Origin: Octopus sinensis
Lineage: Eukaryota
Direction of reading: 5' to 3'
Assembly: GCF_006345805.1 (NCBI RefSeq)
Contig: NW_021835138.1
Span: 1-43,767 of the forward strand
Length of the DNA stretch: 43,767 nucleotides
In this document: positions 6,036-41,290 of the stretch, one piece after another
Position numbering within the stretch: the first letter of the stretch is position 1
Layout: every line of letters begins with the position of its first letter
Notes under the pieces: model-generated
Databases searched by the model: none
Told to the model about the DNA's origin: nothing
What the model saw: only the letters and a program-made list of their open reading frames with translations
Made by a program: the position numbers and the translations under genes

Positions 6036-6810
6036 GAAACAGTTTGGTTCAGTTTCTGTGCTACATCAAACTTCACAGACCCCTAATGGAGCCTGTCTCC
6101 TTCAGGCTATGATGCTTTCTTATACTGACTAACATCAAGAAATAACCAAAGATACAATATATCTGGAAAATATGGAACCATGGTGATGGTCACAGAATAG
6201 GGAATTATATCAAAATTGATAATTTGGTTGTTTAAAACTGTTTCCATCACCTTTGAGATGTTGGAATTTGTTGTTGATTAGCTCCAGGTAGGTTCTCATC
6301 AAACACAACCTATGATGCCTAGACAGTGAATTGAATAACTAGGTATGATCAATAGACCCATATCTCAAAATGTGCTCTCTGAGGAATGGTCCATTGCTCA
6401 AGATGAACAGAGATTTGATCCACAGATCTATAGCTCCAGACATACATTGTGTCCATCTTGCTGAGGTATGATCCACAAACCCAAGCTCAACATGAACAGT
6501 GTCTCCACCTGGCTGACCAACAGACTGTACATTCCAATATTCAGCGTTTACTTGTCACCAATCAGACTGTAATAAGCAGAGTAATGTAGCTGACCAAGAG
6601 ACTCAACACAATGACTGTTGTTAGGTTTATTAGTGCCAAGAAGGACATCCAGATGTAAATAATACTTTAGATAAATTGAAGTTTCTAATTTTTGTAATAT
6701 TTTATGAGAAATATGTGAAACACAGTCTTCTTAACATTGTTGTTTACCTCATTTTATAAGGTTTTGAAACTTTTGATTTCTTTCTTTTTCTAGCATATTT
6801 CATTTAAAAG

Positions 6811-6894
6811 ATGGAATTTGATGAGAATATAAGTAAACTTTTGCTTAGTGACACTCAATATATTAAAGAATATATTGAACAAAATTCACATAAA
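6811..6894 (+). CDS. Coding exon 1a (start exon): MEFDENISKLLLSDTQYIKEYIEQNSHK
   Basis: Polypyrimidine tract and TAG acceptor at 6791-6793, 17-nt UTR, ATG at 6811, GTAAGT donor at 6895. Phase 0 joins INETNSWG of the next exon. Confidence 0.7.
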
Positions 6895-7409
6895 GTAAGT
6901 TGTTCTGTTTATTAATGCCAGGAAGAACATTCAGATGTAATTAATATTTTAGAGGAACTGAAGTTTCCAATATTTGTAATATTTTATGTGAGATGTTAGA
7001 ACCATCAAACTTCTCTGTATTGTTGTTCACCTCATTTTATAAGGTTTTAAAAATCTGTTTTAATTTCTTTCTTTTTCTAGCATATTTCATTTAAAAGATG
7101 GAAGTTGATAAGAATATAAGTAAAATTTTGCTTGATGACATTCAATATATTCAAGAATATATTCGTAACAATTCACATAAAGTAAGTTGTTGTGTTTATT
7201 CTCAAATTTGCTTGTTTGTTATTTTATTCACAATATTAAACATAGGCGTATGAGTGGCTGTGTGGTAAGTAGCTTGCTTACCAACCACATGGTTCCGGGT
7301 TCAGTCCCACTGCGTGGCATCTTGGGCAAATGTCTTCTGCTATAGCCCCGGGCAGACCAATGCCTTGTGAGTGGATTTGGTAGACAGAAACTGAAAGAAG
7401 CCCGTCGTA

Positions 7410-7448
<39 letters not shown>

Positions 7449-10400
7449 CTGTGTTTGTGTGTCTGTGTTTGTCCCCCTAGCATTGCTTGACAACCGATGC
7501 TGGTGTGTTTATGTCCCCGTCACTTAGCGGTTCAGCAAAAGAGACCGATAGGATAAATACTGGGCTTACAAAGAATAAGTCCCAGGGTCGATTTGCTCGA
7601 CTAAAGGCGGTGCTCCAGCATGGCCACAGTCAAATGACTGAAACAAGTAAAAGAGAGTAACAGAGTATTCCTGACTAGGGTAAAGACCCCCCCCTCCTTT
7701 GGTCATGAATGGGGTTGCACCCAGAAAATTCCCTTCTGAAGCATAGGTCTAGGCAAGGTTGTTTATGGAAGACAAGCAGCCACCCTGCCCCTCCATACCA
7801 TCGATGCTATCCAAGGGAAAGGCAAAGGGGCCGATACAGCTTGGCACCAGTGACTTTGCAACTCATTTCTACCGTTGAATGAACTGGAGCAATGTGAGAT
7901 AAAGTGTCTTGCTCAAGAACACAACATGCAGCCCAGTATGTGTTGTGTTTTTGCCTTCTCAAAGTTAATTGTTTATTATTTTATAAAGGTACTAGCAGTA
8001 TCGCCCGGCGTTGCTCGGGTTTGTAAGGGAAATAACTATATAAGCATTTTTAGAGAGTTACTTCCCTTATAGATTCCAATTCGGGCTTTCTTAGCCATTT
8101 CTGTTTTGGTGTCTTCAAGCCATGAAGTCGTTGTTCTAAAAGAACGCTGGTCTCCATTACGACGTTGATTTCCTTACACTCCCTTCCCCACAGCTTCACG
8201 AGGGAGGGAAGAAGGGGGAGAAGCAAACAGGTGCAGCTGTGACCATGGACGCCAACTCCGCTGCCATCGACACACGAAAAATTATGCATTAAAATGGAAT
8301 AAAAAATGTTAAATTATTTTTAAAATCATAGACTCATTGTAGACGCGCGCTAATACTCAGACGAGCTTGATATGAATCACGATTATAAGATACCCGAATT
8401 TGGTTAAACTGCACCGCAAAATGTGGGAGTAGTTAGGACTCTAAATCGTAGGAGACAGACACTCACACAACTAGAGTTTTATATATATAGATATTAAATA
8501 TTCTTAACTAAACAGGGATTTGCCCATCTCTTTCTTCACCTCCACCCTCTAATCCTCGTTATCATTAGATTTTATAACAATTTAACCAAATCTTGGAGCA
8601 TGTCAGACTGGATGGGAATGTGAGAGAGAAGCCCATCATCACAATACTGCAAGGGAGTATTCTGGCAGGAAATGTTCGTTTCAGGAGATGAGATAGAAAT
8701 GGAGCCAACAGATGGATGGTGACTTTGTTAAGAAGTTCTCTTGCCACAAACTGTTGGAGGTTTTACTGATGTGAAGGCCTACACCATTTCTTATGCAGAA
8801 GTTGTCAAACATAAGGAAATACTAATGTGTCAGATAGGAATCAAATCCTCACTTGATCTGGCTTTATAGAATTGTACTTCTGCTCATTGAATTAAAGGAA
8901 GGTACTGAAAGGGATAAATGTAATGGTAGTTTATGACTTTTTACTTCATAATTGAGGGGTCAAGCCATGAGTTGGTCTAATAAAAAGACTCCAGAATGTC
9001 ATATTTGTTGATGCTACCCCTGGTAGAAAACTAAGCTAGCTGAATTTACGAATTAACCCTTGCTTATTCACATTATTTAGAATTATTTGGGTTCAAGAAG
9101 GGTGTCCACAATATCTGCTTGTAACTTTAATTTTTTACATACAGGAGTGATTGCCATTAGGAAGGGCATCCATCTGTAGAAACTTTGCCAGATCAGATTG
9201 GAGCCTGGTGCAGCCTTCTGGCTTGCAGTCAAACCGTCCAACCCATGCTAGCATAGAAAGCAGATGTTAAATGACAACGATGATGATGAGAAAGAATATG
9301 ATTAATAAGAAATTCTCTCACAAAGTTAAGGTTTGCACTTGGAAGTGCTCAAGAGAAACTTGAGACGAAACATAGAAATATATATTACGTAGAAATGTAA
9401 GACCAGGTAATTTAATCCACAAACATGACTCGTGATTTCAGATGGGTTTAAATAACAAGTGTATACCTGATACATCAAAAATATATAAATACACAGACAG
9501 GTGCGTTGAAAGTGTAGCTGCTAGAATAAGAATAGTCTGGGCAAAGTTTAGAGAGCTCCTACCTCTGTTGGTAACAAAAGGCATCTTGCTCAGAGTAAAA
9601 GATAGACTGTATGACGCATGTGTATGAACAGCCATGCTACATGGGCCGTGACTACTGAGGACATGCGTAAGCTCGCAAGGAATGAAGGCAGTATGCTCTG
9701 ATAGATGTGTAATGTCAGTGTGCGTACTCGACAGAGTGTTAATGCCTTGAGAGAAAAGTTGGACCTAAGAAACATCAGTTGTGGTGTGCAAGAGAGAAGA
9801 CTGCTCTGGTATGAGCATGTGGCGAGAATGGCTGAGGATAGCTGTTTGAAAAAGTGCCACACTCTAGCAGTTGAGGGAAACTGTTGAAGAGGTAGACACA
9901 GGAAGACCTGGGGTGAGATGGTGAAGCACGACCTTCAAACATTAGGCCTCACCGAGGCAATGACTAGTGACCGAGACCTTAGGAAATATGCAGTGTGTAA
10001 GAAGACCCAGCAAGCCAAGTGAGACCATAACCTTGTAGCCTATGCCAGGGGCATAACCAGCCCACTTATGCGTACCTTTCCTTTATTGGACACTAAACTC
10101 TGCTTGTGAAGACCTGTTGAGGCAAGTGAAATTGAAATCAAATCAAATTCGCAAATTCGATGACTGGCACCCATGCCAGTGTAGCGCTAAGAGCACCATC
10201 CGAGCGTGATCACTGCCAGAGCAGCTGGACTGGCTCCTGTGCAGGTGGCACTTAAAAAACATGACTTGAGTATGGCTGTTGCCAGTACCGCCTGACTGGC
10301 CCCCGTGCTGGTAGCTTGTAAAAGCACCCACTACACTCTCGGAGTGGTTGGCGTTAGGAAGGGCATCCAGCTGCAGAAACTCTACCAGATCAGATTGGAG

Positions 10401-12971
10401 CCTGGTGCAGCCATCTGGTTTGCCAGCCCTCAGTCAAATCGTCCAACCCATGCTAGCATGGAAAGCAGACGTTAAATGATGATGATGATAGGTTTTAAAA
10501 AACTCTTTAGATGTAGACATAAATATATTAAAACCTACATGTATGCGTAAATATATTGAAGAAGTTTTGAAGTAGTGATGAGAGCGAAATAAAAGATTCA
10601 AGGAGGAAAGAAATTAAAAGTGAGGATAGATAAAATAGGGTACCAGTGGCCATTTCTAGAGGTTAATTGCCGGTAAAAATAAGGGGATATAATACCCATT
10701 ATTTAGGAATTGCTGCTCCTTCAGGGTTACAGGTTTTACAATTGCATGTTGACATATGTATGTATATATATATATATATGCACACATATATATATATGGA
10801 CATATATAATCAAAATAAGCAACAAGGATATCCAGAGGTAATGCACTATGATCGTTTCACACAACTCCATTTAATTGAACAATGCAATCATTACATCAAT
10901 TTAGGATTGCTCTGCATTGTTCAATTAAATGGAGTTGCATGAAACGATTGTACTGCATTACCTCTGGATATCCTTGTTGCTTATTTTGATTCTAATCACC
11001 TTAATGGATCAGTTGTTTTGACATTTCATTTCAGAGGATATTTTTTTATTTCCCTTTTTTAATTATATACACTGTCTTAATTGCAAAAAAAAGTTTTTTA
11101 TCTTGTTTCCTTTATCTTTTTATTATTTGGATTTAAACGAGTTAACTTGGACATTGAAAAAATACATATAACTTAATTATCTTTGATTTTTTTATAAGAT
11201 GTATTGCTTTTAAATCAAAGGAAAGTTTTTTAAAAATGAGACAGTTTATTTAGAATGATAATTTTTAAAACAAGGAGTTACACACAAAGTTATCTTACAG
11301 ACATCACACATGTATCTGCTTTCTCTTCGAATCGGACGAGCAATTGATTTCGTGTCATGCACGTGCATCTATCTAATTATCTTCTTTGTTGTCTTCTGAA
11401 AAATTGTCAGAGTCTGAACTACACATGTCTAATTCATCCCCAGAGTTTTCCAGATCGTGAAATGAAAAATCGCATTCGTGATTACTGAATATATCTAAAT
11501 CTTCATTTTGAGAAAAAAAATGCGTAAATAATTCTCTTATTTGTATAAATAATAGAGAATCAAAACGAGACGGTTCTAAAATGGCATCAACCTTCTCCTG
11601 AATCTGAGAATGCACTGAAGTAAAAGTTCAAAACTCCGAAGCATAAATTCTTTGAAATGGCGCCAGAATATGTGCTGCCAGGCACGTAAATTTGTGATTA
11701 CTCAAAAATGAAACGATACAAAACAAACTCGTTTGAGTGCTAAAATTAAAAATTAATTTTGACCGAGTATACTCGTCTGGTTCTAAAAAGATACATTTGC
11801 GATGCACAAGTAAACTCGGGATAATCCATTTAGGGCTTAGGATCTTTTCCATTTGACCGGCAGTTTTTAAAAATAATTTCTAGTTAACTAAACACTTTCA
11901 AACTTCGTATTCTGGTAGAATGTGTTTATAAAACATCTTTTTCTCTTGGCTTTATTGAGAAAATTCTATAGTTTGTTAGATATTTGTTGTTTTTTTTCTT
12001 CAATTTCTGAAATTTCAACCAATCAATGATGTCTGTTGAAGGTGAAAACATTCTATGCCGTATGAATATGTCCCTTGTTTAAGAAACAGATTGGGTTTAT
12101 TTACATTTCTGGAGAAAAAAAAGATACCCTTCCCCCACCCCTAACCCTAAAACAGATTGAAATGCAATAGATCGATACTAGGGTCATAATTATGGGTTAC
12201 AATTTCATATGACAGCGCTAGAAAAAACTGCCGGTCAAACCAAAGAGATCCAGGGGTTAAATATATCTATATATAATCAGAAAATAGAGAAAATTTTTGA
12301 TCAACAAACAAATTGACCAACATCGGTTGATTATTTTTTACCACAAAACATAACGTAACATGTCTTACGGATATTTCTGCTTTTATGTCATGTTTTCTAT
12401 TGGAAAATAATCAACCGATGTTGGTGAATTTGTTGATCAAAAGTTTTCTCCATTTTCTGGTTATTTAAATTTGATTCTGGATAAACTTTTGTTTATTCTG
12501 TTATTACCTGTACCCTATGAGCATAGTGTGCTTGCATACCCATGCCCAGAGATAGCACAGGTAATTGATACTAATTCCAACCACTAACTCTGCTCACTTA
12601 TATATATTTATTGCCACTAAACAATCAAATTGTAACTGATCTAACGAGCTCCATGTCACTTGGTCTTAAGGGCGATGAATTGATTACTAATGTAAATGTT
12701 TTTACCTATGTGTATACATGTATTTACATGTGTTTATGTGTATACATATGTATGTGTATATGTAATATTCAGGTGTGTGTAGAGTATGTATGTATGTATA
12801 TATATATATATGGTTGTGTGGTAAGTAGCTTGCTAACCAACCACATGGTTCCGGGTTCAGTCCCACTGCATGGCATCTTGGGCAAGTGTCTTCTACTATA
12901 GCCTCGGGCCGACCAAAGCCTTGTGAGTGGATTTGGTAGACGGAAACTGAAAGAAGCCCATTATATATATG

Positions 12972-13002
<31 letters not shown>

Positions 13003-13203
13003 TTGTGTGTCTGTGTTTGTCCCGCCCAACGTTGCTTGACAACCGATGCTGGTGTGTTTATGTCCCTGTTACTTAGCGGTTCGGCAAAAGAGACCGATAG
13101 AATAAGTACTGGGCTTACAAAGAATAAGTCCCGGGGTCGATTTGCTCGACTAAAGGCGGTGCTCCAGCATGGCCGCAGTCAAATGACTGAAACAAGTAAA
13201 AGA

Positions 13204-13236
<33 letters not shown>

Positions 13237-15104
13237 GCTAGCATGCAAAGCGGATGTCAATTGATGATGATATATATATATATATCAAAAAATCAAAATA
13301 GATGAACATCAATGGAATTTGTATCTTTGTGGTACCAGTGCCGGTGGCACACAAGAAAACCATCCGAACGTGGCCGTAGCCAGTACCGCATCAACTGGCC
13401 TCCGTGCTGTGGGCACGTAACAAACACCATCCGATCGTGGCCGTTCGCCAGCCTCATCTGGCACTTGTGTCGGTGGCACATAAAAACACCATCCGAGCGT
13501 GGTCGTCTGCCAGCCTCGTCTGGCACCTGTGTCGGTGGCACATAAAAAACACCATCCGAGCGTGGCCGTTCGCCAGCCTCGTCTGGCACCTGTGTCGGTG
13601 GCACATAAAATCACCCACTACACTCTCGGAGTGGTTGGCGTTAGGAAGGGCATCCAGCTGTAGAAACACTGCCAGATCTGACTGGCCTGGTGCAGCCTTC
13701 GGGCTCCCCAGACCCCAGTTGAACCGTCCAACCCATGCTAGCATGGAAAGCGGACGTTAAATGATGATGATATATATATATATATATATATGTATGTATA
13801 TCTGTAGCGATGACAGGCATTGCTCTCCCAGTCGGTCGCCTGCATATCACAATCCTTAAATTGCAGGCTTGGTTTCTGCCGGGTTCTCTTTCCATTAACA
13901 AGTTCCCCATATAGCATCTGTTTAGGGGTCCTGCTATCCTTCATTCTAATAAGGTGTCCACTCTAACGTCACCGGTGCTTGTACACCATCACCCCAATAC
14001 TCAAGATATCAGCTGTCCTCAGGACCTGTGTGTCTGGAGTTTTTAAGGTCCAACCAATATTCAGAATATGTCTCAAACATCTCTGATGAAAGCATTCAAG
14101 GACCCTTACATGACGTTTGTAAAGGGTCCATGTCTCACATGAGTAAAAGAGCAATGTCAGTAGACATGCACAGTACACAGCAATTTTTGTTTGCCTTGTG
14201 ATGCCATGCTGGGGCCAGACATGAGACAGAAGAGACCGGAAGGAATCAGTTGCTCTCTGCAGCCTGAAAGATATTTCCTCATCCAGGGAGCAAGAACGGC
14301 TGAGTGTGCTGCCCAGGTAGACCCAAACATGTCTACCACCTTCAGAATTGTTCCTTCAACCAAGATAGCTGGTTCTATATATGGAATTCCTGGTGCAGGC
14401 TGGAACATTACAACAGTCTTGTCCAGGCTAATGCTGAGTCCAAATGCCTTGCAAGAAGCAGAAATACGGTTCATAAGTATTTGCATGTCATCCACTGTAT
14501 GAATGACGAAGTCACAGATGGAGGAAGAAGGTTAAAGAAAGGGTTAGCGCCTTTGAAAGAGCATGTATTCTTCTTCATGAAGAATTTAAGCTTGCTGCTC
14601 AGAAGTTAGAGCAGTGAATGGGGAAAGCTTGATTTGCAATGTTTGCAGTTGTGCCTGCTTGTCGGGATTAGGGTTCATTGGCTACCAACGGAGCCGCAAA
14701 TGCAAAATATTCATTCTAGAGCACACACTGTTTCTAAAGGTCAGTACTTCCTCAGTCACAAGTGGATGGCCATCATGTGTATCTGAACGTGGCCAATGCA
14801 GTGCTGCCTTGACTGGCTTCCATGCCTGTGGCACATAAAAAGCACCAACTGACCAACTGATTGTGGCTGTTGCCAGCCTCCTCTGGCCCCTGTGCCGGTG
14901 GCCTGTAAAAAGCACCCACTACACTCACGGAGTGGTTGGCATTAGGAAGGGCATCCAACCGAAGAAACACTGGTATCTCTGACTGGAGCCTGGTGCAGCC
15001 TCCTGGCTTCCCAGACCCCGGTCGAACTGTCCAGCCCATGCAAGCATGGGAAACGGACATTAAACGATGATGATGACATACATACATGTATGCATTTATA
15101 TATA

Positions 15105-15156
<52 letters not shown>

Positions 15157-17441
15157 ATCTGTAGCGATGACAGGCATTGCTCTCCCAGTCGGTCGCCTGC
15201 ATATCACAATCCTTAAATTGCAGGCTTGGTTTCTGCCGGGTTCTCTTTCCATTCACATGTTCCCCATATAGCATCTGTTTAGGGGTCCTGCTATCCTTCA
15301 TTCTAATAAGGTGTCCACTCTAACGTCACCGGTGCTTGTACACCATCACCCCAATACTCAAGATATCAGCTGTCCTCAGGACCTGTGTGTCTGGAGTTTT
15401 TAAGGGCCAACCAATATTCAGAATATGTCTCAAACATCTCAAGGACCCTTACATGACGTTTGTAAAGGGTCCATGTCTCACATGAGTAAAAGAGCAATGT
15501 CAGTAGACATGCACAGTACACAGCAATTTTTGTTTGCCTTGTGATGCCATGCTGGGGCCAGACATGAGACAGAAGAGACCGGAAGGAATCAGTTGCTCTC
15601 TGCAGCCTGAAAGATATTTCCTCATCCAGGGAGCAAGAACGGCTGTGTGTGCTGCCCAGGTAGACCCAAACATGTCTACCACCTTCAGAATTGTTCCTTC
15701 AACCAAGATAGCTGGTTCCACATATGGAATTCCTGGTGCAGGCTGGAACATTACAACAGTCTTGTCCAGGCTAATGCTGAGTCCAAATGCCTTGCAAGAA
15801 GCAGAAATACGGTTCATAAGTATTTGCATGTCATCCACTGTATGAATGACGAAGTCACAGATGGAGGAAGAAGGTTAAAGAAAGGGTTAGCGCCTTTGAA
15901 AGAGCATGTATTCTTCTTCATGAAGAATTTAAGCTTGCTGCTCAGAAGTTAGAGCAGTGAATGGGGAAAGCTTGATTTGCAATGTTTGCAGTTGTGCCTG
16001 CTTGTCGGGATTAGGGTTCATTGGCTACCAACGGAGCCGCAAATGCAAAATATTCATTCTAGAGCACACACTGTTTCTAAAGGTCAGTACTTCCTCAGTC
16101 ACAAGTGGATGGCCATCATGTGTATCTGAACGTGGCCAATGCAGTGCTGCCTTGACTGGCTTCCATGCCTGTGGCACATAAAAAGCACCAACCGACCAAC
16201 TGATTGTGGCTGTTGCCAGCCTCCTCTGGCCCCTGTGCCGGTGGCCTGTAAAAAGCACCCACCACACTCACGGAGTGGTTGGCATTAGGAAGGGTATCCA
16301 ACCGAAGAAACACTGGTATCTCTGACTGGAGCCTGGTGCAGCCTCCTGGCTTCCCAGACCCCGGTCGAACTGTCCAGCCCATGCAAGCATGGGAAACGGA
16401 CATTAAACGATGATGATGACATACATACATGTATGCATTTATATATATATATATATATATACATGTACGTATTTTTATGTGTATTTTTACGTATGCGCTG
16501 TGCATGTGTATGTGTCCATTTCTGTGTGTGAGAATGCTTAAACATATTTGTGCATGAAAAGTTTCTATTAACAGGAATACTAATAAACGCTCTTACATAT
16601 ATGTACGTGTATGCACACATATGTATGTGCATGAGTATAAATGTAAATATATGCGATGATATATATTGTGTATACATGATGATGATGTGTATGTATATGC
16701 ATCTAAATGCATGGAACTAATTATGAATGTCCCTGTGTGTGTGCATATATGTATGTATGTTTATATATATATGTGTGTATATATATGTATAGGTATTTTT
16801 ATATGTATGTATACTGAATTAACAGATGAGTGTAGGAAGCAAATATACGTATATTTTTATATATAGAGATAAGTTTTTCTCTCTTTTTATGTATAACCTA
16901 ACTTCAATATCTCTATTTTCTTATTACTTATATATCATCATCATCATCATCGTTTAACGTCCGCTTTCCGCGCTAGCACAGGTTTGACGGTTCGACCGGG
17001 GTCTGGGAAGCCAGGGTGCTGCACCAGGCTCCAGTCTGATCTGGCAGAGTTTCTACAGCTGGATGCCCTTCCTAACGCCAACCACTCCACGAGTTTGGTG
17101 GGTGCTTTTTACGTGCCACCTGCACTGGTGCCAGGGGAGTCCGGCATTGGCCACGATCGTTTGGTGCTTTTAACGTGCCACCGGCATGGAGGCCAGCCAA
17201 GGTGGCGCTGGCATCGGCCACGTTCGGATGGTGTTTTTTATGTGCCACCGACACTGGAGCTAGTCAAGGCGGCGCTGGCATCGGCCACGTTCGGATGGTG
17301 CTTTTTATGTGCCACCGGCACAGAAGCCAGTCGAGGCGGCACTGGCAACGGCCATGTTCGGATGGTGCTTTTTATGTGCCACCGGAACAGGTATCACAAC
17401 TACTATTTCCATTGATATTTATTTCGATGTTCATGTACATG

Positions 17442-17845: not shown

Positions 17846-20800
17846 TTTATTAATAAAGGTGCAAAGACATCATAAAAACTGTTACTCAGAGTTTCATGTT
17901 CCCGTTAGTCTTACAAATTAGACCAGCCTGGAAAGTGGAAGTAAAACGATGATTGACATACGTGCTTGTGTGTGTAGTCATCTTTCCTGTCCATCTTTTC
18001 CTTTCACATCCCTCTTTTCTCACCCATGCACCTTCCCTACTATTTCTCTTCTCTCTCCCCTTTAATATTTTTCACGTGGCTTCTCTTTTCTTCACTTCAG
18101 ATTAACGAGACAAATTCATGGGGTCTGACATATTTGATGGTTGCCTCTCAACTGGGCAACACTGATTTTGTAAACTTCTTGATAGATTCTGGTGCTGATT
18201 TGGAAGTGAGGGACAAAGATGCTGATACGGCTTTACATTATGCTGTGTTTGGGTAAGTTAAGAATTACAGAAATAAAATCTTCACATCTGTTTTGTTTCT
18301 AAATTTCTTCCAATTCCAGACATCTTAAATGTCCAAAGATGCCATGGCAGTGGCAGGGTTACAGGATGATAAAAATGGTAACCAACAACATCTTTGCCTC
18401 AGTTTCTCCCTGAATCCTCTTCATTATTGAATCGTTAAACTTTTTTTGAGATTTGTTGTCAAAACAAATTACTGTTTGCTTCGGAGATATTATTTGAGAG
18501 TCAGCAGCTCTTGAGATTGATGCTGTGTCATTCATTCTCGGCTTTTAATATTGATTTTGGAAAAATTGATCAATTTTTCTCCAAATAATAATAATAATAA
18601 TAATAAAATTATTGTATACAGTGCTCAGGTGCAGCACAACTTGTCAGAAAGTGCATGCAGTAATGAACAAATGTCTGGAAAGTGAACATGCTTGTGTGAG
18701 TATGGAGGGGAGAAAATCAGGTGTAGTGTTGGCAAATCTCAGGAAGCATGGAAGTTTTGAAGGATGCAGTTCTCCGACAACCAGCAACTGATGCTGGCAG
18801 TTTGTTCCACGCTTCAGCAATTCTCAGCGTGAAAAAATGTTTCCTAAAGTCATGGGAGCTGTGCTGTTTTCTGACTTTGTAAATATGTCCACGGGTGTTA
18901 GATGGGTGGAGTTTGAAAAGGTGCTCAGTGTTATTGTTTGTGCGATGGTTGATAATTTTATGGGTGTCTGCCAGGTCAGCTGCCAGACGTCGGAGTTTCA
19001 ATGTGTCCATGCCCAGGGAAGTAAGGTGTTCAGGATATGGCAAATGCCTGATGGAGGGTATTCTTTTGGTTGCACGTCACTGAACAGCTTCCAGACAATT
19101 GATATCCTGGGCAAGATAGGGGTTCCAGACCGGTGATGCAAATTCCAGGTGAGGTCTTACCATAGCTATATAAAGCCGCAGATAGATAGCCGGAGAGCGG
19201 CTCACAAAGGATTTGGTGAGTGATGCCAAGACACCCTCAGCCTTCTTGACAATTTTGAATATTTCCTTTCAACTCTGAAATGAGAAGAAAGATTCTATAC
19301 TCTCTTTTACTCTCTCTTTTACTCTTTTACTTGTTTCAGTCATTTGACTGCGGTCATGCTAGAGCACCGCCTTTTAGTCGAGCAAATCGACCCCAGGACT
19401 TAATCTATAGGTTTCTTTTGCCGAACCGCTAAGTAACGGGGACATAAACACACCAGCATCGGTTGTCAAGCAATGCTAGGGGGACAAACGCATACACACA
19501 AACACACACATATACATACATATATATATATATACACACACACATATATACGACAGGCTTCTTTCAGTTTCCGTCTACCAAATCCACTCACAAGGCATTG
19601 GTTGGCCTGGGGGCTATAGTAGAAGACACTTGCTCAAGGTGCCACGCAGTGGGACTGAACCCGGAACCATGTGGTTGGTAAGCAAGCTACTTACCACACG
19701 GCCACTCCTGCGCCTATAATTTGTTCTGGCAGAAATAACAAACAGAGATTATGTTGCCCCTCCATCTCCAACATACTCAACACACATGTAGTTGTATTGT
19801 GACCTGAACTCTGCCTCTTCAGATCCTCTCTGGAAATTGAATCATTTTTTAAAGGGATTTTCTTATTTTTATAGCTTCCTCAGTCACAAATTTTTCTTGT
19901 CTTCTGCACACCCACATTTCAGTCTAAATTTGGTGGCAAATTTTCACCACTTCACCAGAAGACAACACTTTCAAATAAATCATCATCATCATCATCATTG
20001 TTTGATGCCCATCTTTCATGCATGGATGGGTAGGACAGTTGGCAGGAGTCAGCCAAGTAGAAAAAAAATCTATCCAATTGGCTTCCTTATGCCGATCACT
20101 CTGAGAGTGTAGTGGGTGCTTTTTATGTGCCACCAGAAGGGGAGCCAGTTAGGTGACACTGGCATCGACCCCATTTGAATGGTGCGTTTTATGTGCCTGT
20201 GACACTGGCATCAGTCATGCTTGAATGACAGTTTTTACATGCTGCCAGCACAAGTGGTACTGGCATCGGCCCCGACTATATTTCATTGGACTCATCAGGT
20301 CTCCTCAAGCACAGTATATTGCCTGACAATTGAAATGTACTTTAAAAGAGGACGGTTCTGTGGCACTGGTATCAGTCACTTGGCTTACCGGGTCTTCTCC
20401 AAAGGTCTCAGTTGCTTGTCATTGCCTCTGTGAGGCCCCAACATTTAAAGATCATGATATATATATATATATATATATAAGAGAAAGGGACAGGCAAAAC
20501 AGGTTGCTTGACCGCATACCGAAAATGCCCGGAGTCCAACTTTGATAGAAATAAGCATTCTTGACTGCTATTTCTATTTTTTCGGTATGCGGTCAAGCCT
20601 GTCCCTTTCTCTTATATACAATATATATACTGAACTTTACAGAAGTTCCTGCCGGTAATCGGCTATATTTACATACCGAATTCTACCAGTAAATAATTGG
20701 GGTTTTTTTAAAAGCCTTTATAGAAATTATTTACTCTTATCATTATATATATCATCATCATCATCATCATCATTTAGCGTCCGTTTTCCATGCTAGCATG

Positions 20801-23494
20801 GGTTGGACGGTTCAACTGGGGTCTGGGGAGCCCGAAGGCTGCACCAGGCCAGTCAGATCTGGCAGTGTTTCTACAGCTGGATGCCCTTCCTAACGCCAAC
20901 CACTCCGAGAGTGTAGTGGGTGATTTTATGTGCCACCGACACAGGTGCCAGACGAGGCTGGCGAACGGCCACGCTCGGATGGTGTTTTTATGTGCCACCG
21001 ACACAGGTGCCAGACGAGGCTGGCAGACGGCCACGCTCGGATGGTGTTTTTATGTGCCACCGACACAGGTGCCAGATGAGGCTGGCAGGTGCCAGACGAG
21101 GCTGGCAGACGGCCACGCTCGGATGGTGTTTTTATGTGCCACCGACACAGGTGCCAGATGAGGCTGGCGGACGGCCACGATCGGATGGTGTTTGTTACGT
21201 CCCCAAAGCACGTAGTCCAGTCTATGCGGTACTGGCTACGGCCACGTTCGGATGATTTTCTTGTGTGCCACCGGCACTGGTACCACAAGATACAAATTCC
21301 ATTATGTTCATCTATTTTGATTTGTTTTGATTTGATTTGATTTGATTTTCACTTGCCTCAACAGGTCTTCACAAGTGTCACTTGCCTCAACAGGTCTTCA
21401 CAAGTGTCACAAGAAGGAAGGTATGCACAGGTGGACTGTCTACGTCGCCGGGTCTTCGGATGGTGTCTTTATGTGCCACCGACACAGGTGCCAGATGTGG
21501 CTGGCGAACGGCCACGATCGGATGGTTTTCTTGTGTGCCACCGGTACTGGAACCACAAAGATACAAATTCCATTGATGTTCATCTATTTTGATTTGGTTT
21601 GATTTGATTTTCACTTGCCTCAACAGGTCTTCACAAGTGTCACGCGTGTCACACACTTGCCTCTGCCTCAACAGGTCTTCACAAAGTGTCACACACTTGC
21701 CTCTGCCTCAACAGGTCTTCACAAGTGTCATAAGAGGGAAGGTATGCACAGGTGGACTGACTACGTCGCCGGGTCTTCGGATGGTGTCTTTATGTGCCAC
21801 CGGCACAGGTGCCAGATGAGGCTGGCGAACGGCCACGATCGGATGGTGTTTGTTGTGCCCACAGCACGGAGGCCAGTCGATGCGGTACCAGCTACGGCCA
21901 CTTCGGATGGTTTTCTTGTGTGCCACCGGTACTGGAACCACAAAGATACAAATTCCATTGATATTCATCTATTTTGATTTGGTTTGATTTTCACTTGCCT
22001 CAACAGGTCTTCACAAGGGTCACACACTTGCCTCAACAGGTCTCCACAAGTGTCACACACTTGCCTCTGCCTCAACAGGTCTTCACAAGTGTCACACACT
22101 TGCCTCAACAGGTCTTCACAAGTGTCATAAGAGGGAAGGTATGCACAGGTGGACTGACTACGTCGCCGGGTCTTCGGATGGTGTCTTTATGTGCCACCGG
22201 CACAGGTGCCAGATGAGGCTGGCGAACGGCCACGATCGGATGGTGTTTGTTGTGCCCACAGCACGGAGGCCAGTCGATGCGGTACTGGTTACGGCCACGT
22301 TTGGGTGGTTTTCTTGTGTGCCACCGGCACTGGTACCACAAAGAATACAATTCCACTGATGTTCATCTATTTTGATTTGTTTTGATTTGATTTGATTTTC
22401 ACTTGCCTCAACAGGTCCTCATAAGTGTCACAAGAAGGAAGGTATGCACAGGACTGACTACGTCCCAGGTCGGGGCCACGGGTTATGGCCTGACTAGTCT
22501 TGCCGGGTCTTCTCATGCACAGCATACTTCCATAGGTCTCGGTCTCTAGACATTTCCTTAGTGAGACCTAAAGTTCGAAGGTCGTGCTTCACCACCTCGT
22601 CCCAGGTTTTCCTGGGTCTACCTCTTCCACAGGTTCCCTCCACTGCTAGGGTGTAGCACTTTTGCACACAACTATCTTCAGCCTTTCTTGTCACATGACC
22701 ATACCAGCGCAGCCGTCTCTCTTGCACGCCACAACTGACGCTTCTTAGGTTCAGCTTTTCTCTCAAGGAACTTACACTCTGACGATTATGAACACTGACA
22801 TTACACATCCATCGGAGCATACTGGCTTCATTTCTTGCGAGCTTACGCATATCCTCAGCAGTCACGGCCCATGTTTCACTACCATGTAGCATGGCTGTAC
22901 GTACACATGCATCATACAGTCTGCCTTTTACTCTGAGCGAGAGGCCTTTTGTCACCAGCAGGGGTAAGAGCTCTCTAAACTTTGCCCAGGCTATTCTTAC
23001 TCTAGCAGTTACACTTTCAGCACACCCACCCCCGCTACTGACTTGGTCTCCTAGGTAGCAGAAGCTATCAACTACTTCTAGTTTGTCTCCCTGGAACGTG
23101 GCAGAAGTTGGTCTCTGCATATTTCCAGTGTTTATTGCTCCTGAGCATTTGCCACAGACAAAAACTATTTTCCTAGTTAGCCTTCCTTTGACATTGCTGC
23201 ACCTCTTATGTGTCCATAGCTTACACTTGGTGCATCTTATAGAGTTTCTACCTACACCTTTTTTACAGATCGAGCAGGGCCATCTACCTGAAGGCGTTTG
23301 TGATTGATCTACCTTCCTACTTATTAGAACTTTGGTTTTGGCTAGGTTGATTCTAAGGCCCTTCGATTCTAATCCTTGTTTCCACACCTGGAACTTCTCC
23401 TCCAGTTCTGATAGTGACTCAGCAATTAGAGCAAGGTCATCAGCATAGAGGAGCTCCCAGGGGCAACCTGTCTTGAATTCCTCCGTTATTGCCT

Positions 23495-23528
<34 letters not shown>

Positions 23529-26500
23529 TAGCAGTGCACCCCAGCATTGCCCGGGTGTTATGACCTACAGCCACATTGTATTATTTATTCCTTTCTTCTG
23601 GGCAGAATCGGCACACAAGGTGCATGAAGCAGGTAATTCTTCTTTATAAACATGTTATTTTTGCTCATTCTCTGATGAACAACACTGCAGTTTCCTTCTA
23701 CTGAATTCAGTCACAAGTTTGTGGTTAGTGTAGGGCTCTAGGGGAAAGCAGTTGCCCGAATGTAGAACCGTGTGTTTGGGAAGCAAATGTCTTAACCACA
23801 CAGTCATCCTTGCTCCTAATGTGTGTGTGTGTGTGTTGTGTGTGTGTGTGTGTTTACATTTGTTGTTAAATCAAGTATTGATAAATATCATTGAGGTAGT
23901 TGCCTCCCTTAGCTAAAGACCCCAAATTTGTGTGACCTGACCTCGTTTTTGATGTTATTTTTGCAGTAAAAAAGAGTTGTTGTGCAAAAAACATACTTTT
24001 ATTTGGTAGCCAAAAGATTGCTGAATCTTCTGATACCTCGTAAATCAAAATCAACAACTCAGTTTTTGAATCCATAAGGAACACACACACACACACTAAC
24101 TCTGTTTTATATATTAAGATATGTGCAGGTGTGTGGCTGTGTGGTAAGAAGCTTGCTTTCCAACCACATGGTTCCAGGTTCAATCTTACTGCATAGCACC
24201 TTGAGCAAGTTTCTTCTACTTGCGTTTAGCAGATGGCAACTGAAAAACCCATTGTATGTGTATATATTTATGGGAATTTGTCCCTCCCACTATCTTCTGA
24301 CAACTGATGTTGGTGTGTTTACATTCCTGTAACTTAGCAGTTCAGCAAAAGAGACTAGTAGAATAAGTATAACGCTTACAAAGTATAAGTCCTGGGGTCG
24401 ATTTCTTCGATTACAAAACCCTTTAATGTGGTGCTACAGCATGGTCGTAGTAAAATGACAAACTTAAAAGAATAAAAAATGCGTAGACAGACAGGTTTGT
24501 ATGTTTGATTTTTTTGACATATTGAACAAGAATGTTCAATATTTAATGTAATTATGTCAATTTTATACATTCAGAGGTCATTGTGATGTGGTGGCCCTCA
24601 TAGTCTCCAAGGGTGCCAATGTTAACAGACAAGACAAGTCTGGCAACACACCTCTCCATTATGCTGTAGAGAAGAACTATGAAGATGTGATGGAAATCAT
24701 ATTAAACACAGAAGCAACTCAGGTTAGTACTCACACACACACACACACACACATACACACACATATACTATTGGCCAAAAGTTTGGGACCACCCTGAAAT
24801 TTTTCACTATGTTCATAAAATTTCCGTGTTTGGAGAATCCAATTAGCCGATTCTATATTATTTCAAATCATTATGCAAGTTTCTCTATAAGTATCGAAAA
24901 TTAATCTTGTATAAGCTGTGGACATTGCTCTTGCATGGAAACCCAGATCCTTTTGCTGAAAATGCCAAAGCATTGAAGGCCCCTTCTGTTGACCCTAGCT
25001 GTGTTTGAATTTGCATCTGTGAACTTAATAGAAGAGAAAAGTACTTTTTTCTAAACTCTGGAGTAAACACTGACCCAGTTTTCTTCTTTCATTTTCAGTC
25101 TGTGATTCAATTTCTGCTGATACAACAACCCTTACTGTATTTATTAAGATCTCATAATTTTGATTTATTCTCGTAAACCCGAGTTCCAGAAAATGGCAAG
25201 AACCAAACAGATTAATATTGAAAACAAGAGCTCAAGTTGAAATTCTTTCAAAAGAAGAATATTCTGAATGCCATATTGCTAGAAAATGGGATTGATCAAA
25301 AAACGATGTGCGTCATGGCCGGAAACGACTTGGTGACACTGGCTCAGATCTTGTCAGGGAAAGATCCGGTCGGCCCAGAGTAACATCTACTGCAGAGGAT
25401 TGGCACTTGATTCTGTTCAGGAAAAGGAATAGAAGCAAAACAGGTCTGGAACTAAGCATTGAATTGAATTCTATGCGACAACATCCGATTTCTCTTGGGA
25501 GAAGACTTCAGTGTTTGTCAGAGGAATGAGTGAAAGTTGCATTGTTCCACCTGTAAGGGATGGTGGTGGATCTTTGGTGATTTGGGGATGCTTTAGAGGT
25601 GAGATTGCTGGAGACCTTGTCAAAATTAAAGGCATAATGCAAAGGGAAGACTTTTATTCACTATTGTAGACGCATGCAATTTCCTCTGGGGGTCGCATTA
25701 TTGGATAGAATTTTGTTTTTCAACAAGATAATGATCCAAAAGACAGCTCTAAATTGTGCAGAGATTCTTTAAAACCAAAGGAAAATAAAAGAATTTTGCA
25801 AATTATGACCAGGAACTCTCAGTCTTTAGATCTTTCGCCAGTTGGACTGGTCTGGGATGAAATTTATTGTAAAGTTCCAAATGAAATGCCTAAGAATGAG
25901 CAAGAGTTGTTTAAAGGGTTTTACAGACTGCTTGGAAATCACTTCTGATAAAATACTTTTACAAGTCACAAGAAAGAATGCCAAGAAACTACTCCACAGG
26001 AATAGAAACTCATGGGGATTTCTTTGGAAATAAAATATGAGTTTTGTTCAGTTTTGTTCTGTGATTATACTCTGTTGATTTTGGGTTAAATTATTGTATA
26101 ATTGGATGCAAAGATAGGAAAAATAAAATTGTTTCTTCAAAAATATAAAACTTATTTTCTTTGCTTTAGAGGAAAATTTCACAGTGGTCCAAACACACAC
26201 ACACACATTATTTATGTACATATATATATATATATATATTATATATATAATCTCATCATCATTTAGCATCTGTTGTCCATGCTGGCATGGGTTGAATCGT
26301 TTGGCCAGGGCTGGCAAGGCTGGAAGGCTGCACCTGACTCCAATCTGATTTGGCATGGTTTCTACAGTTGGATGCCCTTCCTAACGCCAACCACTCTGAG
26401 AGTGTAATGGGTGCCTTTATGTGCCCCCAACACAGGCATCGTACAGTCTGCTTTTCATTCTGAGCTAGGTGCTCTCTGAACTTTGCCCGGCCTATTCTTA

Positions 26501-29500
26501 TTCTGGCATCTATGCTCTCTGATCATCCACCTCCTCTGCTGATTTGCTCACTCAGACAACAGAGTTGGTTAAAGGCAATTGATGGAGTCTATTTTCTGTA
26601 CATTTCTAGTGTTTATTGTACCTGTACTTCTGTCAATCAGACTATTTTTTTTCCTGTTAACCTTCCTTTAATATTGCTGTGCCTCTTTATGTCCATAGCT
26701 TACACCAGGTATACCTCATGGCGTTTCTACTTATCCCTCTTCTACTGATTGAGTAGGGCCATCTACCCGAAGGGATTTGTTATTTGTCCTACTTACCAAG
26801 ACTGGTTTTTGCTAGGTTATCTCTAAGGCTCTTCAATTCTAGACCTTGCTTCCATACCTGGAACTTCTTCTCTAGTTCTGGCAGTGATTCTGGATGGCAC
26901 TGCATAGTACCAAAGAACCCAGCTTCTCCATCTTGAATAAGGACCCAGTACTGTAACAGCTTGGGTTTTAAGGGAGAACAGCTGTTCAATAAACAACCTC
27001 AGGGATTTGCGAGATGGAGATGTGAAGGTCTTCAAGGAGGATCTGGGTAAGTTTTTGAGATCCCAGATGAACGCTCATTGAGGAAGGAGGCACAAAGAAG
27101 AGCAGTTGCATCCAACTTGCTACTTCACCAGAAACTGCACAGAAAAAAACCCCAGTCACACTAAAAGGTGATGCTCCAGCATGGCCTCAGACTCTGAATG
27201 AACCCAAATAAAGAACGCATGTGCGCACATGAGTTTGTACATTACTGTTAAGGGTGTGGACACTAATTAACATCAAAAGTATACATTAGAAATTATAATT
27301 CTTCTTTATTAAACTTGATCTGCTAATCATGTGTTCACTCTTGTTCAAGTCCCCTAAAACTTACTATAGTAAGGGATAAAGGTAGATCAGGCTGAACCCG
27401 ATTTGTTTAGGACATCTTTATTGAGGGACCATATGGAAGGTCCACTTCACTGACACACATCAAATGCACACGATCAGTTTAATCAAGTCCCCAGTAGAAG
27501 ACACAAACGATACATTGATCTTCATCCTGACTTTATGTAAATTTTCTTTCTCTATTCTTTTTACCTCTGTAAAGAGTCATGTGGAAGTGGATACCAGGAA
27601 CAGTAACAAAACAACACCATTGCTCCAAGCCATCTCTGGCGGTCACCTCGGAATGATCCGCAAGTTACTTTCTCGTGGCGCAGATATAAACGCTGTCGAT
27701 AATGATGATAACAACTGTCTGCACTTCGCTGTGAGGAAAGAAGTGTTTCATTCTGAGGGTGAAGCCTTAGGCATTTTAGATGAGGTAAGTTTTGAAATTG
27801 TTTGTAAATATTTGTGAGACAGACAGACAGACAATGTTTGTCATGTCTCAATTCACAGCCATCAAACCCCACCTCCTTTTAGCATTAAGTAATCCAGTCT
27901 TTCTTGATAACCCTACATATATAGTAACTAACAAATTTCCCTTTCCTTCCACCCTCAAAAGCGTGGTCCCCCTCCACTGCCGTGGTGGAAACCGGTCACC
28001 AATTTTGACCACTTAAACACAGCCATCACAGTGTGAAGGAGAGGTGACCTGTTGAAGAGAGGAGATATTATTCCCGGATAGCAATGATACAGGGTAGAGG
28101 AGAGGTCTGTGTAACAGAACAGATGACAACCTTTATAAGGCAATTGCCATGATAAATACATCCAGTCCATTCTGTGAAGGATTCTGACTGAAACAGCTCC
28201 CTGTCACACTTCACCTTCATCATCCTAAAATGCTTTTTTTATTAATTCTGGAATCATTATCGACATGCTTGGCTACGTCTGTGTGGTGTTGCTTGTCTGA
28301 TGTCTGAAGAAATTGCTGTGTTTCAGCCGGTCTCTCTCTCTTCTGATATAACATACATGCTTTGTTGTCATGTTACATTTATATACACAATACTCCCCGA
28401 TCCCTATTTCTCTTGCTGTGGCCAGTTGGCTTTTTTCGAGCCCCATGTATAGATAAGTTCTTGTTGGTTTGTTGTGATATTTGTTCCTTTATATTTCCTA
28501 TTTTTGACTTGATTCTATGATTTTGCTTATAATGTCTATATTTTTTGGTAATTCTGTAATCACCCTTTTATGTTTCATTGTTTGTAGTGCTGTGCTATGC
28601 TTGAATTGGGAAAGAATGCCAGGCTCTCCGGCGCAGTAATAGCTACTTACCTGGCTCTGCAGGGAGCCAACTTTTACCATAAAAATTGCAATAATGCGAC
28701 CCCGTTGGACCTTGTTATGAACCCAGATTTGAAAGAAAAATTTAAATCCCTTTTCCCATCACTGTAAGTATTCCCTAGCAAAGCCAAAACAAATCGGTGA
28801 ATTTTCTATTTTGTACATAATCATGTTTATATGCGTGTTTAGTTTTTATTCTACCAATACATTATACTTCACTGGTGTCTTGAGTAAAGGCCACACAACA
28901 TCATTTAGCGTCCGCTTTCCATGCTAGCATGGGTTGGACGGTTCAACTGGGGTCTGTGAAGCTGGAAGGCTTCGTCAGGCCCAGTCAGATCTGGCAGTGT
29001 TTCTACGGCTGGATGCCCTTCCTAATGCCAACCACTCCGTGAGTGTAGTGGGTGCTTTTTACGTGCCACCCGCACAGGTGCCAGACAGAGCTGGCAAACG
29101 GCCACGAACGGATGGTGCTTTTACGTGTCACCAGCACGGGGGCCAGGCAAGGCTGGCAACGGACACGAACGGATGGTGCTTTTACGTGCCACCGACACGG
29201 TGGCCAGACAGAGCTGGCAAACGGCCACAAATGGATGGTGCTTTTACGTGTCACCGGCACGGGGGCTAGACAGGGCGGCGCCGGCAATGACCACGATCAG
29301 ATGGTTCAGTTAACCACAGCTGCAATTCCCACTGATGTTGATCGACCTCAATTTTGGTTCTGCTTTCTGATATATGATTTGATTTGGTTTGATTTTGATT
29401 GTTCTCACTGGTCTTGCCGGGTCTTCTCGTGCACAGCATACCTCCATAGGTCTCGGTCTCTGGTCATTTCCTTGGTGAGACCTAAAGTTCGAAGGTCGTG

Positions 29501-39014: not shown

Positions 39015-39179
39015 CACACACACACACACGTATATGTATATGTATGTATAACAAAGTGAAGTTGTAAGGTACCGCACGAGTGGAAATCTATATACACACA
39101 TACATATTACACACACACATATATCGATGTCTTTTCTCTTAATATATCATACAGAGATAGTATTTCTATATCGTATGAT

Positions 39180-41290
39180 GTAAAGATGACGCTTTAGATA
39201 CAAATAATTACAGAGGTATCAAGCTGTTGGATCAGGTAATGAAGGTTATGGAGAGGGTCATAGCCCAACTAATTAAAGAGAGAGTCAGCTTGGATGAGAC
39301 GCAGTTTGGTTTCGTGCCAGGGAAAAGCACCACTGATGCCATATTCCTGGTAAGACAGCTGCAGGAGAAATACCTAGCCAAAGATAAGCCCCTGTTCCTG
39401 GCTTTCGTTGACATGGAGAAAACCTTTGACAGGGTCCCCCGATCCCTTATCTGGTGGTCAATGACGAAACTAGGGATAGATGAATGGTTAGTGAGAGCTG
39501 TGCAAGCTATGTACTGGGATGCTGTAAGTAAGGTGAGGGTTGGCAACGAGTAAACTGAAGAATTCAGGGTATAGGTAGGGACCCACCAAGGTTTAGTTTT
39601 CAGCCCCCTCCTATTTATCATAGTTCTCCAGGCAATAACGGAGGAATTCAAGACAGGATACTCCCGGGAGCTCCTCTATGCTGATGACCTTGCTCTAATC
39701 GCAGAGTCACTATCAGAACTAGAGGCAAAGTTTCAAGTGTGGAGACAAGGATTAGAATCGAAGGGCCTTAGAGTCAACCTAGCTAAAACCAAAGTCCTAA
39801 TAAGTAGGAAGGCAAGCAAACCACAAATATCTTCAGGTAGATGGCCCTACTCGATCTGTAGTAACGGCGTAGGTAGAAACTCTATAAGATGTACCCAATG
39901 TAAGCTATGGACACATAAAAGGTGCAGTAATATCAAAGGAAGGCTAACGGGGAAGAAAGTTTTTGTATGTGGCAGATGCTCGGGAGCTATAAATAACACT
40001 GAAAATGCGCAGAGAACAACTTCTGCCACATTCCAGGGAGGAAAACTAGAAGTAGTTGATAGCTTCCGTTACCTAGGTGATCAAGTCAGTAGCGGGGGAG
40101 GGTGCGCTGAAAGTGTAGCTGCTAGTATAAGAAGAGCTTGTGCAAAGTTCAGAGAGCTCTTACCTCTGCTGGTGACAAAGGGCCTCTCGCTCAGAGTAAA
40201 AGGTAGACAGTATGACGCATGTGTACGAACAGCCATGCTACATGGCAGGGAAACATGGGCTGTGACTGCTGAGGACATGCGTAAGCTCGCAAGGAAAGAA
40301 GCTAGTATGATCCGATAGATGTGTAATGTCAGTGTGCATACTCGACAGAGTGTAAGTACCTTGAGAGAAAAGTTGGACCTAAGAAGCATCAGATGTGGTG
40401 TGCGCTGGTATGGTCATGTAGTGAGAATGGATGAGGATAGTTGTGTGAAAAAGTGCCACACACTAGCGGTTGAGGGAACCTGTGGAAGAGGTAGATCCAG
40501 GAAGACCTGGGATGAAGTGGTGAAGCATGACCTTCGAACTTTGGGTCTCATCTAGGAAATGACTAGTGACCGAGACTTTTGGAAATATGCCGTGCGTGAG
40601 AAGACCCAGCAAGCCAAATGAGACCATAATCTCGTGGCCTATGCCAGGGGCGTTACCAGCCCACTTATGCATACCTTTTCCTTCTTTGGACACTAAAACT
40701 CTGCTTGCGAAGACCTGTTGAGGCAAGTGAAATCAAAATCAAAATCAAATTCGATGACTGGCATCCGTGCTAGCGGGTTGCAAAGAGCACCATACGAGTG
40801 TGATCATTGATAGAGCGGCTAACCGGCTTCCGTACCAGTGGCACTTAAAAGGCACCATTCGAGCGTGATCGTTACCAGTGTCGCCTTACTGGCACTCGAG
40901 CCCCGTGCTTGTAGGGTATTAAGAGCACCATCCGAGCGTGATCATTGCCAGAGCGGCTATCTGGCCTCCGTGCTGGTGGCACGTGAAAGACACTATTCGA
41001 GCGTGATCGTTACCAGCATCGCCTTACTGGCACCTGTGCCAGTGGAATGTGTAAAAGATTCAAGCGAAGTCGTTGCCAGTACCGCCTGACTGGCCCCTGT
41101 GCCAGTGACATGTAAAAGCACCCACTACACTCTTGGAGTGGTTGGTGTTAGGAAAGGCATCCAGCTGTAGAAACTCTGCCAGATCAAGATTGAAGCCTGG
41201 TGCAGCCATCTGGTTTGCCAGTCCTCAGTCATTTGTCCAACCCATGCTAGCATGGAAAGCGGACGTTAAATGATGATGATGATGATGATG
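39180..41290 (+). mobile_element. RTE-type LINE, longest RT piece in the window (pseudogenised)
   Basis: NYRGIKLL, QFGFVPGKSTTDAIF, FVDMEKTFDRVPR, YADD and PHD finger are collinear in frame, with stops at about 39551, 39570 and 40316. 3' UTR runs to a (GAT)n tail. Confidence 0.95.

Follow-up and report, generated by a model that had tools for sequence, protein, structure and literature searches.

The 43,767-nt window analysed here is the whole Octopus sinensis scaffold VCDQ01005750.1 (RefSeq contig NW_021835138.1). It carries on the + strand a gene for a predicted product of 393 aa with ankyrin repeats, a RING-like finger and a Death domain, and the start-codon exon of this gene is present twice in tandem, as exons 1a and 1b (Table 1). 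An earlier sequence-only reading had described two 101-nt exons with the same acceptor, 17-nt leader, ATG and GTAAGT donor, and reading the sequence bore out every one of these elements. The gene model downstream of exon 1 was built from consensus splice sites on the + strand. When each start exon was spliced to exon 2, the translations were identical to two RefSeq proteins of one gene (P0001/P0122): XP_029657080.1, named 'MIB2 isoform X1', has the 1b N-terminus, and XP_036355852.1 (isoform X2), whose coding sequence (CDS) starts at 6811, has the 1a N-terminus. Both N-termini are thus already publicly annotated, as computed models. These models join each start exon singly to exon 2, in agreement with the earlier view of 1a and 1b as interchangeable start-codon exons of one gene. 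To our knowledge, the NCBI Gnomon pipeline gives alternative isoforms only where transcript or RNA-seq support exists.

Tandem Repeats Finder placed the duplication at 6617-7200 (period 287, 2.1 copies, 85% matches), and a repeat search of the window paired 6771-6913 with 7058-7200 at 90%. A probe for the 5′ coding part of the exon matched at 6811 and 7098 only, against a chance expectation of 0. The whole units (282 and 287 nt) are 83.5% identical and the 84-nt CDS parts 86%. Immediately 5′ of both exons the sequence reads ...TTTCTTTCTTTTTCTAG; the common leader is CATATTTCATTTAAAAG, and both exons end in phase 0 at ...CATAAA/GTAAGT, so that length, phase, AG acceptor context and donor are the same in the two copies. 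The longest identical run between the units, 41 nt, comprises the polypyrimidine tract, the AG, the leader and ATG-GAA (P = 0.011 by shuffling), and this signal block is near-invariant in Octopus bimaculoides and in one paralogue. The breakpoints of the duplication coincide with the outer two of three occurrences of a 15-nt motif, GTTGTTnnGTTTATT, the middle one at the junction being a hybrid; on this arrangement, the probable origin is unequal recombination or slippage involving short direct repeats. Since the same two copies are present in the independent Octopus vulgaris assembly, the duplication is not an assembly artefact.

Table 1. Duplicated start exon and downstream exons of the ankyrin/RING-like/Death-domain gene (window positions)
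Feature	Position	Strand	Description
Duplication unit A	6617-6898	+	282 nt: 177 nt upstream non-coding, exon 1a and 4 nt of intron
15-nt breakpoint motif, start of unit A	6617-6631	+	GTTGTTAGGTTTATT
Exon 1a	6794-6894	+	17-nt leader, ATG 6811, 28 codons MEFDENISKLLLSDTQYIKEYIEQNSHK, phase 0 end, donor GTAAGT at 6895
Intron 1a-1b	6895-7080	+	186 nt; holds the junction motif, a conserved TATAAG-containing block, and the polypyrimidine tract and AG of 1b
Duplication unit B	6899-7185	+	287 nt
15-nt motif, junction (hybrid) copy	6899-6913	+	GTTGTTCTGTTTATT
Exon 1b	7081-7181	+	17-nt leader identical to that of 1a, ATG 7098, 28 codons MEVDKNISKILLDDIQYIQEYIRNNSHK, donor GTAAGT at 7182
15-nt motif, third copy	7186-7200	+	GTTGTTGTGTTTATT; marks the end of the duplicated segment
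Exon 2	18101-18252	+	common to both isoforms, INETNSWGLTYLMVAS..., first full ankyrin repeat
Exon 3	24575-24722	+	ankyrin
Exon 4	27575-27784	+	ankyrin
Exon 5	28588-28763	+	last ankyrin-like repeat
Exon 6	32048-32187	+	RING-like zinc finger, sub-threshold in Pfam, fourth ligand His replaced by Gln
Exon 7	35619-35690	+	start of the Death domain
Exon 8	38342-38541	+	remaining Death domain and stop codon

A recount of the differences between the two coding parts agreed with the original one: 12 nt differ, in 8 of the 28 codons, and each of the eight changes the residue (F/V, E/K, L/I, S/D, T/I, K/Q, E/R and Q/N), with no codon among the 28 differing only synonymously. These 12 nucleotide differences amount to ~8 mutational events, as one run of four bases (CGTA against GAAC) covers four of the five nucleotide differences behind E/R and Q/N, and S/D stems from the dinucleotide AG/GA. 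The in-frame stop predicted for transcripts that contain both exons was confirmed by translation. With 1a joined to the main 1b acceptor, translation runs through MEFDENISKLLLSDTQYIKEYIEQNSHKHISFKRWKLIRI and ends after 40 codons. The stop, at 7117-7119, lies downstream of the ATG of 1b and 62 nt short of the junction of 1b with exon 2.

On balance, exons 1a and 1b probably both give productive alternative N-termini by splice choice. An old tandem duplication copied the start-codon exon of an octopus ankyrin/RING-like/Death-domain gene together with ~180 nt of upstream sequence. Because acceptor, leader, ATG, phase-0 end and donor are kept in both copies, each can be joined alone to exon 2, which would yield two proteins of 393 aa with different residues at 8 of 28 positions in a predicted N-terminal pair of capping helices. 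The RefSeq isoforms suggest that both mRNAs are really made. As an exon of 101 nt shifts the frame when both copies are included, only single-inclusion mRNAs are productive; the choice would be made at splicing, and probable nonsense-mediated decay would clear the double-inclusion mRNAs. The pair would thus act as mutually exclusive by frame and decay and not by steric or spliceosomal incompatibility. Neither steric hindrance (a distance from donor to branch point below 50 nt) nor U2/U12 incompatibility was found: the intervening intron is 186 nt long and both introns are GT-AG, so these forms of exclusion do not apply.

The same frame arithmetic underlies another role for 1a that the sequence-only reading had raised, that of a regulatory upstream open reading frame (ORF) or decay switch, in which 1a-1b transcripts translate a 40-codon ORF that overlaps the 1b ATG and lowers the amount of 1b protein. 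The 1a ATG lies in the same strong context as that of 1b (AAAAGATGG), and the position of the stop past the 1b ATG is as such a switch would have it. However, no 1a-1b transcript is annotated, RefSeq joins 1a directly to exon 2, and a switch of this kind would not require 28 codons with the hydrophobic helix pattern of the family or a phase-0 donor matching exon 2. What speaks for this role comes down to arithmetic, and we consider it very improbable.

Mutually exclusive exons reportedly arise from tandem exon duplication, as Kondrashov and Koonin are said to have described in 2001 and Letunic and colleagues in 2002. Exons 1a and 1b resemble known pairs of this origin in being adjacent and homologous, of equal length and phase and with the same splice signals (human surveys PMC5740500, PMC8373072 and PMC9741552; review PMC9013439). 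They also encode the same structural element, a helix pair; a frameshift results when both are included; the isoforms match everywhere outside the swapped segment; and the event predates a species split. Steric or U2/U12 incompatibility is not obligatory for mutually exclusive exons, and ~60% of human mutually exclusive clusters have exons whose length is no multiple of three, the commonest situation (PMC5740500). Unlike the known pairs, 1a and 1b are start-codon exons, each with its own ATG and leader, so that joint inclusion yields an overlapping upstream ORF and not a simple internal frameshift. They further differ in that one related species lacks the second copy, that no conserved competing RNA structure was found, and that their exclusivity is suggested by gene models, whereas the junction-read criteria for such exons are that each bypasses the other and that no stable transcript contains both (PMC5740500). 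In the search with the full-length protein, all near-identical matches were NCBI genome-derived proteins, with no near-identical Logan-derived match (that is, from sequencing-run assemblies) among the best 120. An inverted-repeat scan of the region revealed weak AU-rich pairings only, and folding gave a z-score of -1.9. A putative docking/selector structure was considered and set aside. As judged by eye from the alignments, the one candidate stem, in which 6980-6992 would pair with the donors, is disrupted in both O. vulgaris 1b and O. bimaculoides with no compensating change, and conservation of the element does not extend to the paralogue.

Both units are present at the O. vulgaris locus (L001), where A is 98.3% and B 99.4% identical to the window and acceptor, leader, ATG, frame and donor are intact in both exons. 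Between the two species 1a has one synonymous and two replacement changes and 1b one replacement, and O. vulgaris is too closely related to O. sinensis for intactness there to tell much. The O. bimaculoides locus (L002) has a single unit, 91% identical to B and 79% to A; its exon is orthologous to 1b, and the annotated protein begins with the 1b-type sequence MEVDKNISKILLDEIQYVQEYIRNNSQK. No remnant of 1a was detected in this locus, which extends 10 kb beyond the CDS at each end. Exon 1a is therefore dispensable in at least one species, a point against a productive role for both exons.

The age of the duplication was assessed with the closest paralogue as outgroup (P0127, locus L004 on CM016887.1), whose exon-1 unit aligns over ~430 nt including non-coding flank. 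Ten quartet sites, five coding and five non-coding, pair 1b with the O. bimaculoides exon (bootstrap 97%), while three pair 1a with 1b and one supports the third arrangement. Furthermore, the junction motif keeps the C of the paralogue at a site where a G stands both in the copy that follows 1b and in that of O. bimaculoides. Together, the quartet sites and the junction-motif C indicate that the split between 1a and 1b predates the divergence of O. sinensis and O. bimaculoides, which differ over the whole gene by a synonymous divergence (dS) of 0.217. Either O. bimaculoides may later have lost 1a, or an unsampled paralogue may have overwritten it. A recent duplication with an accelerated 1a was examined and rejected. 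With O. bimaculoides as the only reference, 1a seemed to account for every one of the 12 coding changes and for 21 of the 24 non-coding changes assignable to a lineage, and this reading would need an unexplained ninefold faster rate in 1a, intron included; with the paralogue as outgroup, 10 of the supposed 1a changes proved to be states common to 1a and the paralogue. The inferred ancestral exon-1 peptide is MEFDKNISKILLSDIQYIKEYIRKNSHK, from which 1a departs by K5E, I10L, I15T, R23E and K24Q (7 nt) and 1b by F3V, S13D, K19Q and K24N (5 nt). Exon 1 is single-copy in L004; the paralogous loci L005 and L006 were read only around the exon.

Nei-Gojobori counting of 1a against 1b gave 11.5 nonsynonymous differences (Nd) over 70.7 sites and 0.5 synonymous differences (Sd) over 13.3 sites (Fisher p = 0.2). 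Replacement divergence (12/71, 16.9%) equals that of the duplicated non-coding part (28/160, 17.5%), and positive selection is therefore not shown. Under the gene-wide ratio of replacement to synonymous rates (omega 0.37), an all-replacement outcome has P = 0.007 for 12 changes and P = 0.037 for 8 events; under neutrality it has P = 0.13-0.25. Purifying selection at the gene-wide level is thus rejected and neutrality is not, which argues for weak constraint on most cap residues and not for adaptive change. The hint of positive selection in the sequence-only reading, which had judged the numbers too small for proof, is thus not supported by the all-replacement pattern: the replacement rate is that of the neutral flank and the changes are spread over both lineages (7 on 1a, 5 on 1b). 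The substitution-rate check proposed with paralogues and other Octopus species did not single out the pair either: in most paralogue comparisons of exon 1 the proportion of nonsynonymous differences (pN) equalled or exceeded that of synonymous ones (pS), so the pattern is not special to 1a and 1b. Both copies gathered amino-acid differences about as fast as the neutral sequence around them while hydrophobic positions were kept, a pattern consistent with relaxed constraint at the less constrained positions of the cap.

Several observations weigh against productive use of both exons. The evidence for such use consists of RefSeq computed isoforms, and both 1a and 1b are passed over in the evidence-based annotation of O. 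vulgaris, in which one model begins with an unrelated 33-nt exon (window 9298-9330) and another with Met41 in exon 2. No upstream 5′ exon donating to the two acceptors was found, and the TAG acceptor is not conserved in paralogue L005. At position 15, which is hydrophobic in family members, 1a has Thr. The replacement divergence of 1a equals intron divergence, and in simulations the ORF survived by chance in 55% of cases with 7 random substitutions and in 37% with 12; the intactness of the ORF, considered as proof of 1a function, is uninformative and was set aside. Some of these points would also be expected if 1b were functional and 1a a tolerated relic, rarely or never productive, with RefSeq X2 representing low-level splicing noise. 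The single 1b-type exon of O. bimaculoides, the O. vulgaris annotation that passes 1a by, a replacement divergence no different from that of neutral flanks, the not improbable chance survival of the ORF, and the 1a changes I15T and K5E at family-conserved positions all suit a relic. However, the 41-nt block of acceptor, leader and ATG has taken none of the 1a-lineage changes, while ~17-22 fell on the rest of the unit (P ~0.03-0.06, our estimate from quartet-site counts). The 1a donor is intact, none of the hydrophobic residues I7, L11, L12, Y17, I18, Y21 and I22 has been lost, the copy arose before the O. bimaculoides split and has persisted, and an X2 model exists. We judge a relic decidedly unlikely, and these same features argue for a function of 1a.

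Comparison with the paralogues drew attention to the flanks of the start exon (window 6590-7222; L002 9776-10125; L004 9776-10125; L005 1880-2120; L006 1776-2120). Exon 1 is less conserved than its own flanks: between unit B and L006, identity is 79% upstream, 70% in the CDS and 89% in intron bases 1-19, and between B and L005 it is 76%, 58% and 95%, respectively. Across the paralogues, conservation thus exceeds that of the coding sequence over ~200 nt upstream of the exon and over the 19 bases at the start of the intron, GTAAGTTGTTCTGTTTATT. This suggests a putative regulatory cassette, for promoter function or splicing control, around a fast-changing cap exon.

A promoter within this cassette would change the account of how the choice is made. 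Each unit would contain a core promoter, 1a and 1b would be first exons with very short leaders, the choice would fall at initiation, and the apparent acceptor would be a pyrimidine-rich initiator. Protocadherin and UGT1A-type genes have alternative first exons with their own promoters. The window gene resembles them in its tandem homologous start-codon exons, common downstream exon and duplicated conserved upstream sequence, and differs in having two copies only, which are tiny (28 codons) and not whole domains, with a canonical acceptor before each. In favour of promoters, the conservation above that of the coding exon reaches ~200-320 nt upstream and paralogue homology stops ~320 nt upstream of the ATG; TATAAG or TATAAA lies ~39-43 nt upstream of the exon start in five of six units; the TAG at the acceptor position is lost in L005; no upstream non-coding exon was found; and the CDS start of O. 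vulgaris at another exon in intron 1 hints at several start exons. Nevertheless, TATA-like strings are frequent in AT-rich introns, a near-perfect polypyrimidine tract with AG stands exactly at the predicted exon start in five of the six family units, and every unit examined has at least one AG within 20 nt upstream of the ATG, as an acceptor would need. Choice at initiation is therefore unlikely in our view, though it deserves serious consideration beside the choice at splicing that we favour.

An AlphaFold2 model built on a 17-sequence family alignment (mean predicted local distance difference test score, pLDDT, 84) has helices at residues 2-11 and 15-24, both within exon 1, followed by regular ankyrin helix pairs. 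Since these helices lie directly ahead of the ankyrin repeats, exon 1 is predicted to encode an N-terminal capping helix pair; the model agrees with the earlier placing of the changes on the first ankyrin-like helix pair. The seven hydrophobic positions listed above are the same in 1a and 1b. In helix 2 the variable positions are 15, 19 and 23 (i, i+4 and i+8, on one helix face) together with 24, and this periodicity suggests that the variable face is exposed. A bolder proposal is that the cap is a specificity surface in a fast-evolving Octopus ankyrin/RING/Death family, with 1a and 1b kept by selection as two recognition variants within a conserved regulatory cassette. We regard it as improbable; if true, the pair would parallel the combinatorial linker exons of the paralogues described below, and the family might act in innate immunity or signalling.

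Events of this class are well described and both isoforms are already in RefSeq; in other respects this is an ordinary exon duplication. It adds one cleanly dated invertebrate case, with recognisable breakpoints and a relative that would have returned to one copy, in which a duplicated start-codon exon would give alternative N-termini. It also corrects two impressions, namely that the all-nonsynonymous pattern is a signal of selection here and that the MIB2 label describes the architecture of the protein.

Pfam found ankyrin families in the product, with Death at 21.7 bits (cutoff 22.6) and zf-C3HC4_3 at 18.7 bits (cutoff 27) both scoring below threshold, and reported no MIB/HERC2 or ZZ domain. 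The gene shares with the MIB2/Mind bomb E3 ligases the order of ankyrin repeats and then a C3HC4-type RING-like finger, which accounts for the best-hit name MIB2. In contrast to those ligases, it has one sub-threshold RING-like finger with a His replaced by Gln, MIB repeats and a second RING were not seen, and it has a C-terminal Death domain of borderline score. It also belongs to a large, expanded ankyrin/RING/Death-domain family, seen here in three Octopus species, nearly all close matches coming from O. sinensis, O. vulgaris and O. bimaculoides. MIB2 is thus a best-hit label and not a family assignment. The fourth zinc ligand encoded in exon 6 is Gln in O. sinensis and O. vulgaris (CGQMVIC) and His in O. 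bimaculoides (CGHVVIC); E3 ligase activity is doubtful, as is the MIB2 name. In the O. sinensis paralogues P0041-P0046 and P0026-P0032, RefSeq isoforms vary in tandem linker segments of ~17-26 residues, which sit between RING and Death domain, are used alternatively or combinatorially (e.g., VCPKFEEKAVQTVAESV) and are absent from the window gene. Exon duplication with alternative use seems to be recurrent in the family.

Intron 1 contains several further features. The 33-nt exon at which O. vulgaris CAI9744513.1 starts lies at window 9298-9330 on the + strand (L001 10001-10033), encodes MINKKFSHKVK before its GT, adjoins a dispersed repeat, and in O. sinensis is likewise intact and continues in frame into exon 2. 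An origin of MINQKFSHKVK, the N-terminus in O. vulgaris, from a third copy of exon 1 was considered and rejected, as the peptide comes from this unrelated exon beside a repeat. A ~350-bp dispersed repeat resembling a short interspersed nuclear element (SINE) occurs in four copies across the window (7240-7600, 12811-13149, 19392-19717 on the - strand, and 24130-24410). The first begins 58 nt after the 1b donor, and ARAGORN called no tRNA in it. Within intron 1, 13770-15119 and 15127-16461 form a transposon-derived tandem duplication of 1350 bp (98.2% identical); one O. vulgaris segment matches both copies, so the sequence appears to be single there.

Downstream of exon 2, a segment of ~2.9 kb (20634-23497) has no counterpart at the syntenic position in O. 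vulgaris. Within it, on the minus strand at 22494-23387, is an ORF of 297 aa that resembles the C-terminal part of a retrotransposon reverse transcriptase, and a related fragment lies at 39179-40555 (+). The RefSeq annotation of the O. sinensis chromosome scaffold CM016887.1, also the home of paralogue L004, includes a 152-aa protein (XP_029653116.1) identical to this gene's C-terminus; to judge from this match, the window scaffold may be an unplaced or alternative-haplotype piece of the CM016887.1 region. The O. vulgaris models P0020 and P0124 continue from the last exon of this gene into downstream sequence (about 42503-42664), one of them running into a neighbouring gene with leucine-rich repeats and a Death domain; these extended models are probably read-through or merged annotation.

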